A stretch of 51,790 nt of DNA, filler included, from Calcarisporiella thermophila CBS 279.70 (taxonomy: Eukaryota; Fungi; Calcarisporiellomycota), in NCBI RefSeq assembly GCF_041956535.1. It is 3 parts of 3 records of this genome, joined end to end, with 100 filler letters (N's around TTAATTAATTAA, not from the genome) between each part and the next. Parts side by side here need not be neighbours in the genome. Positions count along the whole stretch, not along the records: positions 41,034 to 51,790 come from NW_027192216.1; 2 more parts are not named here. One strand, 5' to 3'. A model generated the notes under the pieces. It had not been told where the DNA came from and did not search any database. It saw only the letters and a list, made by a program, of their open reading frames with translations. The translations under genes were made by a program, and so were the position numbers. This document shows positions 41,034-51,790 of the stretch, in pieces (position 1 is the stretch's first letter; each line of letters starts with the position of its first letter).

Positions 41034-41071
41034 GTTGCTTGATCAAAAAAAAAAACTAGAGGTCACTCACC

Positions 41072-41383
41072 GGCCGTCCCTGGATGGCACAGTGGTTAAG
41101 AGTCCCGGGGCTTAACCAATGTGTGCTGGGTTCGACTCCCGGCGATGGCACCTGTACTAGAGATGGGTCCGGGACATACTCTAGGAATCGAGCTATAAGA
41201 TACTCCGTTCTTAATAATTTGATATTGATCGTCCTCAGAAAACAAGAAATACGTTTAATATAGGGCCTGTCAGAAGAAATACATGTAAGCAATGGTTGAG
41301 CGTTAGAAATAGCGTGCAAATCCTTTCATTTAACTTGTATAGGGGACTTTTCAATAAAAGATCCTTCAATCTCAAAAAAAAAA
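41072..41383 (+). mobile_element. tRNA-derived SINE, family 1
   Basis: A box TGGCACAGTGG, B box GGTTCGACTCC, acceptor-like stem GCCGTC/GATGGC. 3' tail GACTTTTCAATAAAAGATCC followed by A10. Confidence 0.8.
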
Positions 41384-41632
41384 TCAGAAAGCGCGATATC
41401 TTTCAAGTAGAGCAGCCAATAGAATTGATTGTCGCTACGTTGCCGACCCCTCGTGGTTACTCGCCGGCCTCGTGGTTACTCTTATGCTCCCTCATGGCTA
41501 TCTTGTTGATGTTGATTGATACTTTGTTGTCTTATCTATCTCATCTTTGAACCCCAGTGAGAGTTGTTCTCCTTTGTTCACAATTCTATTTAAACCCTTC
41601 GGTTTATTTTAATGTTCAACACCAATTCCCTG

Positions 41633-41792
41633 AATTATTAAGATAAATCTCTTATTTTTATCAAGATCCGGATATCCCTCCACACAAACCTCTTTTCGCC
41701 TGTAACAGATTGAATCAGATGTTCTTGTAATTTATTTAGAAGGAAAATTTACCACTACAATCCCTCGATCGAGAGGTCACTCACTCACTCAC
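41633..41792 (+). other. Anchor/target sequence, copy 1: hairpin, motif and (TCAC)4
   Basis: Aligns by eye with the reverse complement of 51288-51443. Ends CCTC-GATCGA-GAGG-TCACTCACTCACTCAC. Confidence 0.75.
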
Positions 41793-42129
41793 GGAGGAGG
41801 GTTAGTGTAGTGGACTATCCCTGGTATGCCGATGAGAATGGCGTGGGTTTGAATCCCACTTCCTCCACCAGCACTTACTCTTAGTTTGTGACTGCTGTCC
41901 ACTTGATCAGTAATTGAGTCTTTATTATTGAAAAGATCGCTCCTACGATAAGTACAAAGATTACATCGGTTTCACGTACATGCTATTCACGACAACTACG
42001 ATATGCGCATATCGATTGAACGCCTATCTATCACGGACCTATATCTCGCTATATTAAGTCCATTGACATTAACTTCATGTAATATATGAAAATTAAATAA
42101 AAAGTTTCCATTGATTGACCAAAAAAAAA
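41793..42129 (+). mobile_element. tRNA-derived SINE, family 2
   Basis: GGAGGA...TCCTCC-ACCA acceptor stem with CCA, A box TAGTGTAGTGG, T-arm GTGGG-TTTGAAT-CCCAC. Ends ATTAACTTCATG..AATAAA..A9. Confidence 0.8.
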
Positions 42130-42146
42130 TTCGAGAGGTCACTCAC

Positions 42147-42434
42147 TTGGATACAAATCCAAGGAGACAAAATATCCTTCAACCAAAACATTTAGCTCCA
42201 ATACGATATTGCCGAATGCCCTATCATCCGTATTCCAAGTTTCCCTTTTACTTTTCTTTTCCTTTTTTATCTCCTTTCCTCTCTCGTATACCACCTTCCT
42301 TGAAAAATAGGAAGGTATCCACACTATCTACCATGTCTTACATGTATTGCTTATTATCTAATATCTTGATATCTATCAAAATCCTTTACTAACAAAAAAG
42401 AGTAGTTTTAAATAAAGATCCTTCAAAAAAAAAA
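42147..42434 (+). mobile_element. 5'-truncated retroposed insert, probably a LINE 3'UTR
   Basis: Bounded by motif copies, with a pyrimidine tract. Ends AATAAAGATCCTTC-A10 like the SINE tails. Confidence 0.6.
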
Positions 42435-42519
42435 TCGAGAGGTCACTCACCAGGTTTAACAGAGTAGGATACTTTTCAATAAAAGTTTTATTTGTTGAAA
42501 AAGGTCTTTCTTTTATTTT

Positions 42520-42971
42520 GGGGGTGGAGTAGCTTAGTGGTAAGCGCTCCCAGGTGCCATCGAGATGGCACGGGTTCGAACCCCCATCAGCACAAAAAAT
42601 GTGAATGGACACTCCACTAATTCTGTGTCTTGCTTGTCGTGTCTATGCTCTCCATTAGTATTACTTCTGTCTTTCCAGTCCGGTTTTCTACAGTCACTCT
42701 CTTCGTCCCGTCGCGCCTGGCTCCTCCACAAGTATCGCCTCTGTCTTGTCGTGTCTGGTCTTCCCATTATTACTGTCTCTCGTTACTGTTCCTTGCTTGC
42801 CGTACCTGTCGTGTCGAGTTATTCTACTATTACTGTTCCTTAATTGGTCTATACCTTCTGCCAGCAATTTGGCTATGATCTGCACAAAGGCGTACGACCC
42901 TTGATTCACCTTCAACGATTAACTTCATGAGGATACTTTTCAATAAAGATCCGTAGCTTCAAAAAAAAAAA
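42520..42971 (+). mobile_element. tRNA-derived SINE, family 3, whose body matches the LINE 3'UTR at 49985-49586
   Basis: A box TAGCTTAGTGG, B box GGTTCGAACCC. Body 42611-42960 aligns with the reverse complement of 49595-49980. Ends in A11. Confidence 0.85.
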
Positions 42972-42985
42972 GAGGTCATTCACCA

Positions 42986-43101
42986 GGGGGAGGAGTAGCT
43001 TTGGCTATAATCTGTACAAAGGCGTATGACTTTTGATCCATCTTCACCGATTAACTTCATGAGGTCACTTTCCAATAAAGATCCGTAAAATAATTAAAAA
43101 A
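42986..43101 (+). mobile_element. Internally deleted mini-SINE of family 3
   Basis: GGGGGAGGAGTAGCTT head fused directly to the TGGCTATAATCTGTACAAAGGCG..AATAAAGATCCGTA tail. Confidence 0.75.
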
Positions 43102-43268
43102 GAGATCACTCACTACCCATCCAAGCACGGGACTCTTTAAACTTTAACCTTTGCGTTCTTGTACCTAATCATCTTGTTCAGTAGACTCCCTCACAAGCAA
43201 TATAGTTTAAATAAACCACAAGGCACAAGTTCTCGCCTCCATAGAGGAAAAAAAAAGGTCATTCACCA

Positions 43269-43800
43269 TCCATCCATAGCTCTTCAGTGGCACTAGAAGA
43301 GAAAAGAGGAATTCACTTGAACCCGCAGTTGGCAGAGGCACTGTTTCAGGAAGTCCCACAAGTTGAAGGAGCATGTATACTTGCGTTTGGGAAATGCGTG
43401 CTAGCTAACTCAAAGATCTAACACTTCCGCACTAGAACGCGAAGACTATACAGGTCAAAACAAGGCGAGAATATCACATCTGAATGGAACGAGACCCTAC
43501 GCAACTTCATCAAAAGAGAGATAGCGTTGATGTACTGATTGAGGCTAAACCAACTGTACCGAAGCATAGAGACCTATTATGAAGTTTTTTAATCACAGTA
43601 TGGTCATAGAAAGTAACTTATGTAATACCGATGAGGAATGAAGACCATAGAGCACGCTTTCTTAGAATATACAAGAATTGATGACCTTTGGAGGTGATTC
43701 AATAGATCCTACTAAAAAATTATTTTATTTTCTTTTCTTTTCGTTATTACCATTTTCCATTTATTATTTGTTATTTCACAACATTTTCTACTTATAGCAC
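43269..43800 (+). pseudogene. Possible degenerate LINE ORF2 C-terminal fragment after the last motif
   Basis: Interrupted frame ..KCVLANSKI*HFRTR..SEWNETLRNFIKREI.. followed by a T-rich region. Weak similarity only, and the end is approximate. Confidence 0.3.
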
Positions 43801-44083
43801 ATTTCATCTAATATTATATATCCAACTACTGCGCATTTTATAATCGTTTATAAACAGTGTTTTTGGTTTCAATTATGAACTAAATTTTGCAAATAATCAT
43901 TTTCTAAGTTCTTTAGAGAATAATTGAGTTTGTCTGTTATTGATGTTTTAATAACAGTACGTCCTCTATCATTTTATTGAATTGTTTACTTCATCAACTC
44001 GTTATTTAGAAAGCTGAATACTAAATATTTGTGATTTCAATAGCTTTGTATTTATTAAAAAATGGAAAAACTTGGTAAATAAA

Positions 44084-45367
44084 TTATAAAAAATTCAATA
44101 TAATCAACCAGATCCAAGTAATGGTTTTAATGAGGATATTGCTTGTATTTGATCTATAACTGATATTAATCGGTTTTGGAGCCGGAGTCCTTGGTTGATA
44201 TCCACCTGCTAAGGCTCCATTTGCTATAGTTAAGTACTTGCAATATTCTCTGCCATTTTCCAGTAAACTCTTCCCAGTTTCATGGTCTACCCCGACAGAC
44301 CTCTGCCCACTCCAAATCATTTCAGCTGCTTTATTCACGTCATACCGCATTCCAGGGGTGACTAAGTCACATGCTTCGTTGCAAGGGGCATACGAGATCG
44401 CACCACTTTCAATACCAAACAGGGTTGTCATTCCAAGCTTAAGGCGATTTGCGAGATATAGATCAATTATTGCTTGAACGAGCACAGTGTAATTGCGCAC
44501 AATGGAGGTGAGTACCTGCTGACTGTTAGGGAGAGCCCCAACCGCCCAATCTGAACACCACTGATCTGTGCCATGACCAATAACAGGTTTGCCCGCGACT
44601 GCAAAAGCCTTAAGAGCTGCTGTTCCCATAGCACCTCCACCAGCGTTCCATAGCACATCTGCACCATGTTTCAGAAATATCTGGGCATAGTACTCTCCCA
44701 AAACGTTCTTTACCAGGCTCTCAGCATAAATACAGAGTACCCCACACTCACTGCACACAGATTTCACTCCGTTGGCAAAACCATTAACCAGTCTAGTGTA
44801 AGACAAACTTGTGGAGTTTGACCCACTAATAACTGCAGGGAGCCTGTTGAGATCTCTTGCAAATAAACCCGCCACAATTCCAGCAAGAAAGCCTTCATGT
44901 TCTTCGAGAAATACTGCAGAGGCTACATTCGGGGCTGAAGAAGGATATTCATAATCAAGGATTACGAATGTCGAGTTATTAACAATATTTTGACCAACAG
45001 AATTCCATGCATCAGCAGCTTGTTGGCCAAGTGCGATGATTAAATCTGATTGTGAGGCTTTTATAAGTGCATGGCTGTACTCTTCAAGCTTTTGAGTTGG
45101 GGGTACTATAGCGGGTTGAGCCTCACACATTCCTATAAAATCATTGTAAGTTTGTCATTTCATTCGACTAATATATGGGTCTAAAGAGAATATTTTACCT
45201 TGCGACCGCGAACACGCGGCTGCAGCTCCAGCCTGTATAAGATAAGCAACATTGCATTTAATGGAGAAATCGGATTGCGGAGGCAAAACGATCTGGACCG
45301 ATACAAGACGCGCAGCTGCAAATGATCCAAGCAAAAGAAAATATAAACATATATAAATTGAGATCAT
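44084..45367 (-). CDS. BMP/PnrA-family (bacterial basic membrane protein) solute-binding-like protein, secreted and possibly GPI-anchored, 2 exons
   Basis: NVASAVFLEEHEGFLAGIVAG, RLVNGFANGVKSV, GADVLWNAGG, VIGHGTDQ, VLTSIVRN. N-terminal signal peptide, intron 45198-45133 in frame, hydrophobic C-terminus. Confidence 0.8.
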
Positions 45368-46457
45368 CCCTAGGTCTCATGCTTGATAAAAGCATAATTA
45401 ATTAACACTACATTTAAAAATTAACGGTATTTTTTCAAAGGAGGCCAAATTGAAAATACGTCTAATTTAAACTACAATCAGGACACAATTTTACTCATTA
45501 AATATTTTTAAGATCGATATACTATTTTGGCTTTTGGGTGAAGAGATTTTTTTAAATATTACTTCACTGCTTAGGCATCGAATTTATTAATTTGAGATGG
45601 CATGATACTCGAAAATCAACTATATGCCTAAATATATATGACGATCTCTTTGATTATTAAAGAAAATTCAATATACTGTCATAAAAAGACAGAATTGCAT
45701 TTGCAGTATCTTTGACAAAACGGCGATTGATAAATATGAGCTACACGTATTTAAGTCGATAGTTTTTATAATTGAATCCAACATAGTGTTCTATCGTTAC
45801 TAGTTAAAGTTATTTATTTAGTATTTTAGATGTCCAATTAATTTATTGTACGCTGAATGATAACAAGCTATTATCAATTCTAAAAACCTTCTCCTTAATC
45901 ATAATCCAGATTTAGAATATCTGAGATCCAACAAACCTCACTAGCAATAATTTCTCATAAATATTCCAGGGCTGGGATTTCTGGCCTTGTATGAACGATA
46001 GGATCTGGAGAGTTCATTGTGCGATGCGATCAGGGAATTTTGAGCGGTGATCAAACACTATGATGTTTAGTCAGAGAAATGAGTAGATTGTTCGTTGATG
46101 GAGATCTAAAGCTTATCCCAATTTTCTGAGATCTGTGCAACTTTTAGCCAGGGTCGGGACACCGGTTAATAATGTTTTAAGTTCAATAATGCCGATAATA
46201 TCGTTTCTGTCGGGAGATGTACTCTAGTTCAAGTCTGCAGTCCAGGCCATACTTAGTTTTTTTATCTATTGGATATTTTAACGAAAATACTTCGTAGAGG
46301 TATTTGGATAAGATAGATTAATAAGGTAAAATCGATTAGGATATATTTCTAGCCTACTCTATCTTACAATACATGTGAGGAGTAAAAGCAGGTTATAAAT
46401 ACACAAAATATGTAAAGAAAATAATTTCGACAAGAGTATAAATGACTTTGGTTAAAG

Positions 46458-46619
46458 TGGGGGTGTTCACGCTTCCAGCTTATTCGGATTATTTTGCTTA
46501 AAAATAAGCAAAATTCTGCATTTTAACTGGCTACTAAAAATCATTAGCCAATCACAATGCGCTATTTCGCTTATTTATGATCAAAATAAACCGAATAATC
46601 AGAAGCGTGAACACCCCCA
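46458..46619. mobile_element. MITE-like element, ~160 bp
   Basis: Perfect 18 bp terminal inverted repeat TGGGGGTGTTCACGCTTC / GAAGCGTGAACACCCCCA, extending imperfectly to ~50 bp. No clear TSD. Confidence 0.7.
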
Positions 46620-46626
46620 ATAACTA

Positions 46627-48227
46627 CAAGTAAGGAAAAATGTGTCAGTGTATTTTATCAATTTTTCTTTGAATGCTCTTATCTCCTGAATGGATGGAAT
46701 ATTATACAAGCGGTTTTATTATTAAACACAGGTGGATCTACACTATGTGCTGTTCCAACCGCTAGCCCGCTAGTTATAAATGCATTTCTGATAAAACTAG
46801 GATAGCATTGAATAGCACCCCGAGTTTATGGGAAATTGATATCTTTATAAATATCGATGTGTGCCAAAGAGACCCAAATACTTTTATATTCTCTCCACCA
46901 TTCCATCTAAATATTTTTATTTGCAATGGTGGTGTTTTTATTTTTTTAACACTATCTTACATCTATGAAGCCAACTCGTAAAAAGATTCGAGATCGTGTG
47001 CTTGAACTTTCAAGAAAGGGAGAGTCCACACATAAGATTGGTGCACGAGTGAGAATAAGCCGTGAAACTACTAGAAAAATCATCAAGCAATGGAGCACCC
47101 CGAAATATCCTCTTATGAAGCCAAAATATGGTCGTCCACGTAGTCTAAGCGAATCAGATGAGAAATACATCGCTAAGAAGGCGTCAACTGAAGAGGGTTC
47201 TAAGCTTGCCGACTTGCAGCAAGTTATCAAAGAACTTAATAAGAGCGTAACAAACAAAACTGTAAAAATGATGCTCAGACGTCACGAAGTAGAGCCTCGA
47301 TCAAAGCCTAAAAAGCCTTTGCTGCTCCCACGCCATTTTAAAGTTTGATTCAAATTCGTAGCTCAACTCGCTAGATAGGATTTTTAGACCATTCAAACCA
47401 TAATATTATCGGATGAAACCATTATACTCTTTTTACAGACCACGGCAAAGGAATACACATACGTAAAGAGGGGGCAGCTTTTGCGTGAGTGCAATATTAT
47501 TCCAACCACGAAACAGGGAAAAGAGGCAATCATGGTATGATGCTGCATTACCTCGTAAGTGTGGGGCTTCTACTTCGCGTGGAAGGCGGAGTAAATGCTA
47601 GGATGTATCAGACCATTTTAGATGAGGGTTTTATTGGAATACTCGAACGGTACGGGATGGACAAGGACAAGGTCGTATTCCAACATGATAGCGCCCTCAT
47701 AACGCCAAGTCAACTCAAGCATGGCTGCGAGATCGCAATGTAAAGGACTTAGAATGGCCTGCTCAGTCACTGGATTTGAATCCCATAGAGAATGCGTGGG
47801 GCATCTTGAAGAGATGGCTTCAAGATTATTCTACTCGGCCAAAGGAAAAGCCCTGGGAACGAATCAAATACACGTGGGAGAATATAGAAAAGACCTATAT
47901 TGATAAACTATATGAGAGTATGTTGAGGAGATTCCGAGCTGTTTATAAAGCTAGAGGAGGATATACGAAGTATTGAAATATTATTGTGAAATAACGATAA
48001 ACATGTTTTCAATTTTATCATGAAAGCCCTTTTTCCTGAACATCTATATTAATACCCATGGTTTTTTAGAAAATGCATTTATAACCAGGATAGCGGTTGG
48101 AACAGCACATAGTGTAGATCCACCAGTTTTAATAATAAAGCCGCTTGTATAATATTCCATCCATTCAGGAGGTAAGAGCATTCAAAGGAAAATTGTTAAA
48201 ACACGCTGTCACATTTTTCCCTACTTG
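46627..48227 (+). mobile_element. Tc1/mariner transposon with ~170 bp TIRs and a pseudogenised transposase (46965-47976)
   Basis: TA|CAAGT...ACTTG|TA ends. [30 protein letters not shown]. Several stops and frameshifts. Confidence 0.93.
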
Positions 48228-48979
48228 TAGATCGACTGATTTAGTTATTCTTTGTATCCACGAAATCGCAAGCTATCTTTTGACTACCATCGAATTGAAT
48301 CAGTAAGCCTCCTACCAATTTCTGCTTAAGTCTTCATTTTTTTTCTCCGTGCATGTACCCACTGCTCTTTAATTGCAATAAATAGCCCTATAAGAAGTGA
48401 TATAAGGATAATTTATGGATATCACGAGGTATACTGCATTTTTCTTAATCTTTATTTTTTTTTATAATTTTTAATAATCTCCTATTAGCTATTTTCGGAA
48501 AATACAAGGAAATTTTAAGGAACCTGCAGCATTCCCCATAGTTTCCATATTTTTTTTCCTGTGATCAATTCTTATATGGTAGTCCAGATAGAGAGATACA
48601 TTTGAGTACATCTGACATTGTCTACCAATAGCGTGGCATCATCCTCTTCTCGGTCATCTATGACGATTACAATATTTATCTTGTATATGGTTCAGACAAT
48701 GGTATCGTATAGGAGCATGGAGATTTACCGGTCATTTGCTTGTACTTCCCCGTGGTATCCGAAGAGCTGTTTGAATCTCTGAGTGTGTGTCTAAGGCTTA
48801 TATGGGATCCCTTGACGTCTTCTATTGAATACCTCCCAAAGGTCAACAATTTTCGCGTATTTTCAAAGAAGGAATATTCTATGACCAATACCTTTTCACG
48901 CCGGCATCTCTTGCTATTAAGGCTGCTACTAGATTTGTTGTTATTTGGGAAAATAACAAGTCCATTCCGTTTTAACATT

Positions 48980-49572
48980 AGTCCTATATTGAAAAGTGTC
49001 CTATCTTGTTTAAAATGGATGAGTAGCTTTCATGTCATATTCCCCAAGGAAATGCTCCTGGTCTACCTTGGATGAAGAAGTATAAAAAAAAAGAAGGAAA
49101 GCGAGAAAAACAAAAAAACAAACAAAAACTAAAAAAAGTAAATATATAAGGAGTAAGACAGGTCAAGCGAAGCTGCTTTGTATCATAGAATGAATCAAAG
49201 TATTGCATAAAAAATATGATATTTGTGAACATGAAATAAAGGAATAGGATAAAATATAAAAAGAATAAGAAAAGAAAGTAAGAAGAGAAGAAGAGCAAAA
49301 AGAAAAGGAATTGGCTATAGTATGCAGCAGAGAGAGGTTGGAAGAGGTTCTCACAGCGGAGTTGCTTGATGTTAAGGCTGCTGTTTGCTACATAAAGGTA
49401 TCCTGGATAAATATCACAGTTTCATCTATAACAATCAACCAACTTCTTCTTGGGCTTTTGTCGATAAAGTCTTCCTCCTGATCCTGTTTTATTGCCGCCA
49501 ATCACTTGAAGCTTATCCTCGCCGTAGTTTGTAGTCATATTGCATTGTTATGGATATCGGGATAGGATGGTT
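48980..49572 (-). mobile_element. 5'-truncated LINE, lineage B (ORF2 C-terminus and 3'UTR)
   Basis: PISITMQYDYKLRRG..AAIKQDQEEDFIDK..RSWLIVIDETVIFIQDT is homologous to PVAITKQFDHELQRG..KKDFIDKWSRGNWVNIIDDSVFFTQDT of lineage A. Its tail matches 51052-51140. Confidence 0.75.
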
Positions 49573-49585
49573 GGTGAATGACCTG

Positions 49586-50570
49586 TTTTTTTTTGAAGCT
49601 ACAGAACTTAATTGAAAAATATCCTCATGAAGTTAATTGTTGGTGAATCAAAGGTCATATGCCTTTGTACAGATCATAGCCAATTGCTGGCAGAAGGTAT
49701 AGACCAATTAAGTAACAGTAATAGTAGAGCAAACAGACAAGCAGAGAAAACCAGACACAACAAGTTGAGTAAACCAGACACAAAAGATACGGCAAGCGAG
49801 GGATATTAATGAGAGACAGTAACAATGGAAAGGCCAGGCACGACAAGGCAGAGGAAATACTAGTGGAAGAGCCAGACACGACAGGACGGAGAGGGTGATT
49901 GTAGAGAACCAGACTGGAAAAAGCCGATAATACTAATAAAGAACATAGACACGACAAGCAAGGCACAGAATTAGTGGAGAGTGCGGTTCTCAAGCCGGAG
50001 TTGGGACTGGGGTTTGATCTTCAGAGGTGTCCTGGGTAAAAAACACGGAATCATCTATGATGTTCACCCAGTTTCCCCTTGACCATTTATCGATGAAGTC
50101 TTTTTTCCGATTCAGTTTCGTTGCCATCCACCACTTAGACTTTACTCCTCGCTGTAATTCGTGGTCAAATTGTTTGGTTATGGCTACCGGATTGGATTGG
50201 GCATCATCTAGCACTAATTCAAGTCTCGAGCGGTATATCCACAAGGCTATGTTGTGGCTCAGAGCGACCACTTCGTTGAAGCGTTGGTCTATTTGTTTGT
50301 CTTGTCCAAACAGTCTGTCTTCTCTCGTGGATTCGTGTGGCGATATTCCAGTGATTCTGCAGTTTGTCTTGTCAACTCTTTGCCAGAGTTGTGCGATAGC
50401 TGGGCAGTCTAGAAAGGTATGGGCAATTGTTTCGGGTATTCCTAGGAAATACCTTTTGCAAGTGTTTGAATTTCCAGTCCATTTGCTAGTGATGATTCCG
50501 ATAACTATTTTGTGCTTCATAAGTCTCCAGCGAAGGGTTCTGTGCTTGGGTTCTGACGGATGCTTTTTCT
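49586..50570 (-). mobile_element. 5'-truncated L1/Tx1-type LINE, lineage A (zf-RVT region, 3'UTR, poly(A))
   Basis: EPKHRTLRWRLMKHKIVIG..CKRY..PETIAHTFLDCPAIAQLW..IALWIYRSR, stop at 49990, ~400 bp 3'UTR, A9. Motif on both sides. Confidence 0.85.
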
Positions 50571-50583
50571 GGTGAGTGACCTC

Positions 50584-51020
50584 TTTTTTTTTTAAACACG
50601 CTCAAAATATTTTATGTATCTGAATAACATATACATGAGAAAAGGGTAAAACAGCTAAAATAGGTTGGGAAGGAAAGAGTAAATAATAGAACATGGTAGA
50701 ATAAAAACGTATTTTATCCAAGACAAAGAGCTCGAGAAAAAATAAAATGAGTGAAAAGCTAAAATATCTAATCACAGCATTCAAGACAGCAACAAAGACA
50801 GCTTCCAATAGCACATCCAAGATAAAGGTTTCCGCAGCAGCCGTCATCTTTCTGAGGAGGAGGTTGTTGGACGTATACGACATTGAGAGGGGGATTGGGA
50901 GCATAGGCTTGCTGTGGTGGGGGTGGATATCCATAATAACCCTTGTCTTGCTGGCCGCTCCTGTTATCAACCGGAAGTTTTAATTGCAATTGGGAGAGGG
51001 GAAGACGGGATAAAATAGAA
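50584..51020 (-). pseudogene. Processed retrocopy of a host CYSTM (cysteine-rich tail-anchored membrane module) mRNA
   Basis: Intronless SGQQDKGYYGYPPPPQQAY..VVYVQQPPPQKDDGCC..GCAIGSCLCCCLECCD*. AGG stands where ATG is expected (50962-50960). 3'UTR plus A10, flanked by identical GAGGTCACTCACCAG. Confidence 0.8.
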
Positions 51021-51035
51021 CTGGTGAGTGACCTC

Positions 51036-51287
51036 TTTTTTTTTTACAAAGGACCTTTATTGAAAAGTGTCCTATCCTGTTAAAAAGGTAGAGTAGCTTC
51101 TACGTCAAAATCACCCAGGTAATGCTCCTGGCCTACCTTGCAGAATTTGGAGGATAGAAGGAAAAAGAAAGAAAGGAAGAAAAGGATTTAAGTGTAAGAG
51201 GAAGAGAGAAAAGGTGATGAGGAGAGAGCTAGGAGAGTATGGAAACAGCAATTAGCTTGATAAAGAAGGGGATAGGAATAACTGTAA
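51036..51287 (-). mobile_element. 5'-truncated 3'UTR insert with a lineage-B-type tail
   Basis: Pyrimidine tract, CCAGG-AGCATTA-CCTGG and GTAGA-AGCTAC-TCTAC hairpins, GACACTTTTCAATAAAGGTCC, A10. Confidence 0.7.
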
Positions 51288-51443
51288 GGTGAGTGACCTT
51301 TCGGCCAAGGGATTGTAGTGGCGGATTTTCCTTATAAATAAATTACAAGAACATCCGAATCAATCTGTTACGGGCGGTTGGAGACTTGTGGAGAGATGTA
51401 CGGACTTAAAAGAGAAAAATAAGAGATTGGTTTTAATAATAAT
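51288..51443 (-). other. Anchor/target sequence, copy 2
   Basis: The minus strand reads ..CGCCCGTAACAGATTGATTCGGATGTTCTTGTAATTTATTTATAAGGAAAATCCGCCACTACAATCCCTTGGCCGAAAGGTCACTCACC, homologous to 41697-41784. Confidence 0.75.
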
Positions 51444-51790
51444 ACTAATAGAATAATATAACCAGTGTATCCTCACCTTAAAAGAGAAAAATAAGAGATT
51501 GGTGAGGAACAACAAGTCAAAATGGATGGATTTAAATAAAGATAGGAAATCAGAAAAATGACTCAAAATAGATGTTCCCAAGGATAAACTAAAAATGCAT
51601 CTTTTCAAAACAAACGATCACAAGAAAACAACAAAAGATCAATAACATAGCACTATATAATCTTATCCCTCGTCATGTGATGTCGTCGGGTGAACCGGAC
51701 TACATTAAAGACCGCCACCTCACTCCCCGAATCCCAGAGTGACTGCTTACGTGACTTCTCTGTACCAAAGACCAATATCCTCGTAACAAA

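Follow-up and report, generated by a model that had tools for sequence, protein, structure and literature searches.

Head-to-tail retroposon stacks separated by copies of a short target-site duplication in the early-diverging fungus Calcarisporiella thermophila

Two opposite-strand arrays, in which a short motif, GAGGTCACTCAC(CAG), alternates with retroposed inserts, were studied in Calcarisporiella thermophila, an early-diverging fungus. They lie in the piece 41034-51790 of the window (the whole stretch of DNA analysed, 51,790 nucleotides, to which all coordinates without a locus label refer), on scaffold MU987589.1 of assembly GCA_041956535.1. Runs of N bound this piece at both sides and the plus-strand array runs directly into the gap, the N starting immediately left of 41034. 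The piece was compared with a longer stretch of the same locus that reaches past the adjoining N gap (L001), and with ten other loci of the same genome (128.6 kb non-N), collected via the proteins of their long interspersed nuclear element (LINE) tails. These ten loci share families of LINEs and of short interspersed nuclear elements (SINEs) with the window and contain about 39 recognisable retroposon 3' ends; the sampling covered about 0.15 Mb of the genome in total.

With up to two mismatches allowed, GAGGTCACTCAC was matched 12 times in the piece versus 0.45 expected, and none of 100 shuffled sequences reached 12. The match at 43061-43072 is a variant of the common SINE 3' tail sequence, placed within a SINE tail and at no junction, and hence 11 junction copies were counted, seven on the plus strand (41059, 41773, 42135, 42439, 42972, 43102 and 43255) and four on the minus strand (51289, 51024, 50572 and 49574). 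Nine of the 11 are preceded by a run of 6 to 12 A, directly or via CTA, TCGA or TTCGA. The copies at 41773 and 51289 have no A run, and the approximately 150 nt upstream of them are mutually homologous (82% identity). Pattern scan and shuffles therefore confirmed the 11 copies, the two opposite-strand arrays and the nine A runs of the original prediction. The flank-proximal copies match the motif exactly, and transitions are present in the distal ones; a C-to-T change (CATTCAC) is common to the distal copies at 42972, 43255 and 49574, the flank-proximal copies reading CACTCAC.

A different insert follows each motif copy, always in the same orientation: SINEs, LINE tails, a short family (F) and a fragment of a CYSTM-like open reading frame (ORF). 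At least nine different inserts were distinguished, belonging to unrelated families, with different 5' truncation points and tails of A6 to A12, and they include LINE tails of 252, 288 and 983 nt. Comparison with other copies of these families confirmed the earlier observation that every motif copy is followed by an unrelated insert in the same orientation. Both stacks are closed on the right by older, diverged LINE tails (72-81% identity). A third stack was found beyond the left gap, at L001 19231-20332, with SINE-B, A8, CTA plus the motif (one mismatch) and a 5'-truncated LINE. Before the first copy of each stack stands a repeat of about 430 bp resembling a long terminal repeat (LTR), TGTTACGAG ... 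CGTAACA, of which a solo copy with a 4-bp duplication is present in L005; the motif begins 61-65 nt past the end of this repeat. The features of both stacks and of the comparison loci are given in Table 1.

Table 1. Features of the two retroposon stacks of the piece and reused sites in the comparison loci
Position	Strand	Feature	Support or remark
41034..41058	+	3' tail, A11 and CTA of a retroposon cut by assembly gap	adjoins N run
41059..41070	+	Motif copy, exact	pattern scan
41071..41383	+	SINE-A: tRNA-like head, AATAAA tail, A10 at 41374-41383	head 84% to L004 10432-10568
41384..41707	+	Part of LTR-like repeat between about LTR position 58 and GTAACA end	92% to L005 9644-9982; LTR 5' ends aligned
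41708..41772	+	65 nt behind the LTR, constant flank on the upstream side of the reused site	homologous to 51301-51365, minus strand
41773..41792	+	Flank-proximal motif copy and TCACTCAC slip	pattern scan, flank comparison
41793..42129	+	SINE-B, full length, tRNA-like head, A9	85-93% to at least 8 copies in six loci
42130..42146	+	Duplicated site, TTCGA and motif	pattern scan
42147..42434	+	Insert C: 5'-truncated LINE-type tail, 288 nt, A10	81-83% to inner parts of longer elements (L006, L007, L008)
42435..42453	+	Duplicated site, TCGA, motif and CAG	pattern scan
42454..42971	+	Insert D: short tail fragment followed by SINE-C, whose head starts at 42520; A11-12	inverted repeats I1, I5-I9 with 49586-49989
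42972..42986	+	Motif copy (CATTCAC variant) and CAG	pattern scan
42987..43101	+	Insert E: SINE-C with internal deletion, degenerate A tail	repeat D2; family comparison
43102..43113	+	Motif copy (GAGATC variant)	pattern scan
43114..43256	+	Insert F: short family, ...TAGAGG tail and A run 43248-43256	75-78% to L004 9256-9395 and L007 10965-11101
43257..43266	+	Right-most motif copy, GGTCATTCAC	pattern scan
43275..43722	+	Old 5'-truncated LINE ORF2/tail fragment ending the stack, no motif behind	74-77% to L008 10351-10610 and L007
51366..51790	-	LTR-like repeat variant 1, TGTTACGAG to GTAACA, start cut by gap	repeat alignment
51301..51365	-	65-nt post-LTR upstream flank	homology to 41708-41772
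51289..51300	-	Flank-proximal motif copy, AAGGTCACTCAC	pattern scan
51036..51287	-	Insert G: 252-nt LINE 3' untranslated region (UTR) tail, A10	95% to L005 10542-10786
51021..51035	-	Motif copy and CAG	pattern scan
50584..51020	-	Insert H: poly(A) copy, CYSTM-like ORF fragment 50768-50989, no in-frame ATG start	feature score 0.90 to CYSTM clusters
50569..50583	-	Motif copy and CAG	pattern scan
49586..50568	-	5'-truncated LINE, 983 nt: ORF2 C-terminus with CCHC/zf-RVT (49990-50568), 3'UTR, A9	88-92% to copies in L002, L003, L006 and L001 beyond gap
49574..49585	-	Right-most motif copy, CAGGTCATTCAC	pattern scan
48962..49573	-	Older 5'-truncated LINE tail ending the stack	repeats D5, D7; 72-81%
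L006		Further stack, four copies of TACTTTTTTTAC-type site	
L008		Further stack, three copies of ...CACGTAGAGGG site	
L004, L005, L006		Further stacks, two copies each of other sites	
L007		Further stack, degenerate series	
L002 3196-7754; L005 7783-9982; L003 9210-9283; L004 12664-12740; window 41384	- (L004)	Hits at LTR positions 54-58	three subfamilies

The motif had been proposed to be a target-site duplication regenerated at every insertion, the locus growing as a head-to-tail log of retroposed RNAs. Flank homology, duplication boundaries and solitary duplications support this view of target-primed insertion. The TCGA found behind some of the A runs corresponds exactly to the bases that precede the motif in the unique flank. 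The duplications of a stack, read from left to right, become shorter but never longer at their left boundary and longer but never shorter at their right one, as serial insertion into a duplicated site requires, and the nick positions fall within 6 nt. Elsewhere SINE-B, the LINE and families F and C are flanked by other sequences, and clean duplications of 14-17 nt of unrelated sequence were seen around solitary copies (L004 979/1321, L004 1860/2046, L007 6564/8501 and L002 3248/7744); the motif is thus part of the target, not of the elements. On the upstream side, the sequence between the units is that of the target in the unique flank; on the downstream side, behind the oldest tails, no such copy was found.

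The LINE is, judging from its domains, most probably an L1/Tx1-like element of the apurinic/apyrimidinic endonuclease (APE) type, as had been predicted, although its three domains were found only in pieces, from different copies. The N-terminus of ORF2 matches Exo_endo_phos at L002 3552-3800 (E 5.6e-4, below the gathering score, the region being cut by a gap), RVT_1 fragments are present in L004 and L011, and zf-RVT/CCHC was detected in the 983-nt LINE of the minus-strand stack (weak match) and in proteins P0008 and P0012. In relatives with about 40% identity, APE, RVT_1 and zf-RVT regularly occur together. The full-length LINE that was sought is represented by one near full-length copy of about 4.5 kb with a 14-nt duplication, L002 3262-7754, in which a leader of about 290 nt without recognisable ORF1 precedes an ORF2 opening with the APE N-terminus; most of this copy lies inside an N gap, and no complete LINE was recovered. 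At L002 7755-9199 there is a separate poly(A) element of 1.4 kb with ORFs and a CCHC knuckle just downstream of the first of them, which may be an ORF1.

A SINE body that matches the 3' region of a LINE commonly marks a LINE-SINE partnership. The body of SINE-C matches the LINE 3'UTR (42609-42972 versus 49583-49982, 82-91% complementary) and the tail of SINE-D is the tail of the LINE in L002, so that such a partnership, with a SINE 3' region in common with the LINE, is supported by these alignments. The SINE-C body and the LINE 3'UTR are opposed and 7 kb apart and, if both were transcribed, could pair as double-stranded RNA. The head of SINE-B gave 26.4 bits with the Rfam tRNA model, under the gathering score of 29 bits, and ARAGORN found no tRNA genes in the piece. 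Insert H had been described as a host mRNA copy. This is plausible; because the insert has no in-frame ATG and its parent gene was not found, a homologue search with the CYSTM-like ORF yielding none, the label is weakly supported.

Stacking was also observed elsewhere. About half of the sampled 3' ends in the ten other loci sit in head-to-tail stacks on other, locus-specific duplications, and at least eight further stacks on other duplicated sequences were recognised in L003-L008. Positions 54-58 of the LTR have been hit by different elements in at least five copies, in L002, L005, L003, L004 and the window. The hit in L002 is that of the 4.5-kb LINE with its 14-nt duplication, two or more units are involved in L005, and in the diverged LTR subfamilies of L003 and L004 the hits are at positions 55-57, with different duplicated sequences. 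A different repeat, with one copy in L004 and one in L006, was hit at another site in both. A sixth copy with the LTR hot spot is possible in L009, where the comparison was made by eye only. Also by eye, a tRNA gene was noted at L005 7700-7760 (minus strand), immediately adjoining the solo LTR on which a retroposon stack sits.

Identity of the units to other members of their families was determined from the flank-proximal end outwards. It was 93, 83, 80, 88, 78 and 77% in the plus-strand stack, 95, 92 and about 75% in the minus-strand stack, 97.5, 96 and 85% in L006, and 98, 97 and 94% in L008, falling outward overall in all four informative stacks. Flank-proximal units therefore seem to be younger and the stacks seem to grow at their flank-proximal end, a polarity that we infer rather than observe, since identity to relatives is confounded by family age.

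Taking these data together, the arrays are probably stacks in which each unit was inserted independently into one small site by target-primed reverse transcription, by way of the L1-like APE LINE. According to this model, the APE-type LINE would nick the bottom strand where the site begins, inside a window of 6 nt, and prime on poly(A) RNA; the top strand would be cut 12-17 nt downstream, and repair would duplicate the site. The downstream copy of the duplication would end up behind the poly(A) tail. The upstream copy would stay joined to the unchanged flank (LTR end plus 65 nt), and because it keeps this flank the complete site would be restored as an intact target and hit again. As only the upstream copy keeps the recognised context, new units would enter there, which fits the exact flank-proximal and altered distal motif copies, and the stack would grow flank-proximally, recording 5'-truncated transcripts of the LINE, those of partner SINEs and at times a further poly(A) RNA. 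The same machinery would reuse many sites of unrelated sequence, several of which occupy fixed positions of LTR-type repeats. We infer that the reuse derives from a relative site specificity of the endonuclease, or of a target-recognition step, that reads upstream context.

An alternative is that the resident element assists the next insertion, for instance by offering its poly(A)/T tract for an L1-type nick or by attracting the newcomer through an RNA polymerase III complex on a SINE head, with the flank being passively re-duplicated regardless of its sequence. Stacking at many unrelated sequences, the orientation of the resident kept by new units and the many units that are tRNA-like SINEs would all be accounted for. 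We nevertheless regard it as unlikely. The boundary behind the poly(A) varies within a stack (TCGA.., GAGG.., GGTC..), which places the nicks in unique sequence and not in a T tract, solitary duplications do not begin A-rich, and the younger units lie upstream and not behind the tail of the resident; on these three grounds insertion into the poly(A) tails of residents, the explanation favoured at first, was dropped. Moreover, the right-most, founding units are LINE tails and not RNA polymerase III genes, and the same positions were hit in independent repeat copies, which indicates a real, if relative, site specificity and argues against simple attraction by a resident element.

A second alternative, a strictly sequence-specific endonuclease with GAGGTCACTCAC(CAG) as its dedicated target, in the style of R1/R2 or of the Tx1 clade, is quite improbable. 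The three stacks at the locus do use the motif, two of them in separate LTR copies, and the clustering of nick positions within 6 nt would agree with it. However, the motif follows none of the approximately 39 retroposon 3' ends in the ten other loci, despite the same LINE and SINE families, which show ordinary duplications of 14-17 nt there, and SINE-B alone is associated with at least eight different duplicated sequences. The original prediction had treated GAGGTCACTCAC as the fixed target of such an endonuclease, and had set in advance, as the observation that would speak against this, family copies elsewhere lacking the motif. The copies do lack it, which contradicts a dedicated target in the sample: GAGGTCACTCAC is the sequence of one particular hot site.

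That a short-read assembly joined repeats through the A run and the motif has a very low probability, too. It would agree with the N gaps bounding the piece, which begin inside the stacks, and with the position of SINE-A at a contig edge with mismatched flanks. Each junction (tail, A run, motif and next 5' end) is, on the contrary, shorter than a read and unique in its combination, so that all 11 must exist somewhere in the genome, and comparable stacks are found inside contigs at seven other loci.

Finally, a motif carried by the RNAs themselves, as 5' leader, 3' extension or template-switch partner as in U6/L1 chimeras, can practically be dismissed: every unit does start directly behind the motif, with a constant part whose end point hardly varies, but other copies of the families lack the motif at both ends, the motif is only 12-17 nt long and, where the stack begins, it extends to the left into unique flank, the variable extra bases matching that flank. 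Chimeras of the U6/L1 type have a constant full-length small RNA at the 5' side and one duplication around the whole chimera; the arrays do not show the features of such template-switch retrocopies, the constant part being only 12-17 nt long and continuous with unique flank. Unequal crossing-over was also ruled out as the origin of the stacks, all units being different.

Several points weigh against the proposal of serial insertion. No recognisable motif copy stands behind the oldest right-hand LINE tails of either stack, and the founding duplication is therefore incomplete. The flanks of SINE-A do not match, with the motif on the 5' side and an LTR site (S5) on the 3' side. The two stacks have the same C-to-T variant in their right-most copies, which hints at common ancestry or exchange as opposed to fully independent growth. 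Both stacks abut N gaps, and their unit order is that of the assembly. Identity to relatives is, as stated above, confounded by family age. The reused sites, at least ten in a small sample, have no obvious common sequence; a search by eye among them (GTCAC, TTTAC, a purine block about 25 nt upstream) gave nothing convincing. With about 0.15 Mb sampled, further stacks on GAGGTCACTCAC may exist elsewhere.

A broader reading, which we put forward as a tentative possibility, is that stacking occurs genome-wide in C. thermophila, the L1-like machinery reading context that lies some tens of bases upstream of the nick and frequently within LTR-type repeats, with targets that restore themselves and growth at the flank-proximal end only. 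If this were true, the stacks would be ordered, datable logs of retroposed RNAs, host mRNAs included, and natural self-renewing landing pads. If polarity and upstream recognition hold, the system would be a natural self-regenerating integration site that offers a simple time-ordering of retroposition events. The repeat-spacer layout has an ordinary cause, a reused target-site duplication, and the idea of a new dedicated LINE target has been corrected. What remains of interest is the degree of reuse, with about half of the sampled ends in stacks up to at least six units deep, the apparent young-to-old order and the fixed hot spots in LTRs. The retroposon stacks also account for the assembly gaps at these loci.

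Other features were noted between the two inverted stacks. An intron-containing gene for a Bmp/PnrA-like substrate-binding protein is located at 44166-45367 on the minus strand (Pfam PF02608, E 6e-24); its product is identical to a predicted C. thermophila protein. Besides its own record, the relatives of this protein in the search were only bacterial (33% and 30% identity), and the gene is therefore a candidate for horizontal transfer into the fungus. A degenerate Tc1/mariner-type transposon occupies 46625-48233, with terminal inverted repeats of about 100-145 bp (46624-46767 versus 48088-48230) and remnants of HTH_Tnp_Tc3_2 and DDE_3 broken by stops; copies are present in L007 and L004. Next to it, at 46463-46614, lies a palindromic element of 150 nt with perfect ends, which gave a sub-threshold match to Rfam MIR8562 (41.6 bits versus a gathering score of 211 bits) and is more likely a hairpin similar to miniature inverted-repeat transposable elements than a microRNA gene.

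The arrays were compared with several known systems. They resemble clustered regularly interspaced short palindromic repeats (CRISPR) in the layout of repeat, variable insert and repeat, and probably in polar growth beside a constant flank. The likeness is one of layout only, as already predicted: this is a scaffold of a eukaryote without cas genes, a fungus, the neighbours are the Bmp-like gene, the Tc1/mariner relic and SAP18, the "repeat" is a target duplication, the "spacers" are poly(A) retroposons of 115-990 nt, and no immunity function is implied.

Among elements that insert at a defined position of another repeat or gene are Tx1L (in Tx1D), Keno, Mutsu, R1 and R2. Tx1 and R1 are APE LINEs, Tx1 also having a CCHC C-terminus, and families of the Tx1 clade and the R elements use one dedicated target for nearly all copies. 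The motif of C. thermophila, unlike such targets, is absent from all the other sampled insertions.

Double insertion at one site is also accepted as the way in which tandems with a target-site duplication between their elements arose in Drosophila, where examples are an R1 array with a 33-nt duplication of ribosomal DNA and P-element dimers, and where non-LTR tandems run from the tail to 5'-truncated internal sequence (10.1101/158386). Most of those tandems are dimers of one family that unequal exchange has later expanded, whereas every unit is different in C. thermophila, which points to growth by insertion and not by amplification.

The closest precedent is found in trypanosomatids. Their ingi/RIME and L1Tc/NARTc retroposons form tandems separated only by a 12-bp duplication, which have been explained by repeated independent insertion at the same position and attributed to a pattern recognised upstream of the duplication (PMC3820030, PMC5814959). 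As in C. thermophila, ingi/RIME, L1Tc/NARTc and Tvingi/TvSIDER1 combine an APE-type LINE with non-autonomous partners. The fungal stacks differ in their host, in the L1-like LINE with a CCHC/zf-RVT C-terminus, in the common upstream pattern, none having been found so far, in their depth of at least six units of several families and in the many hot sites at fixed positions of LTR-type repeats. The stacks of C. thermophila are, accordingly, a fresh example of the known retroposon tandems of ingi/L1Tc type that are separated by target-site duplications.

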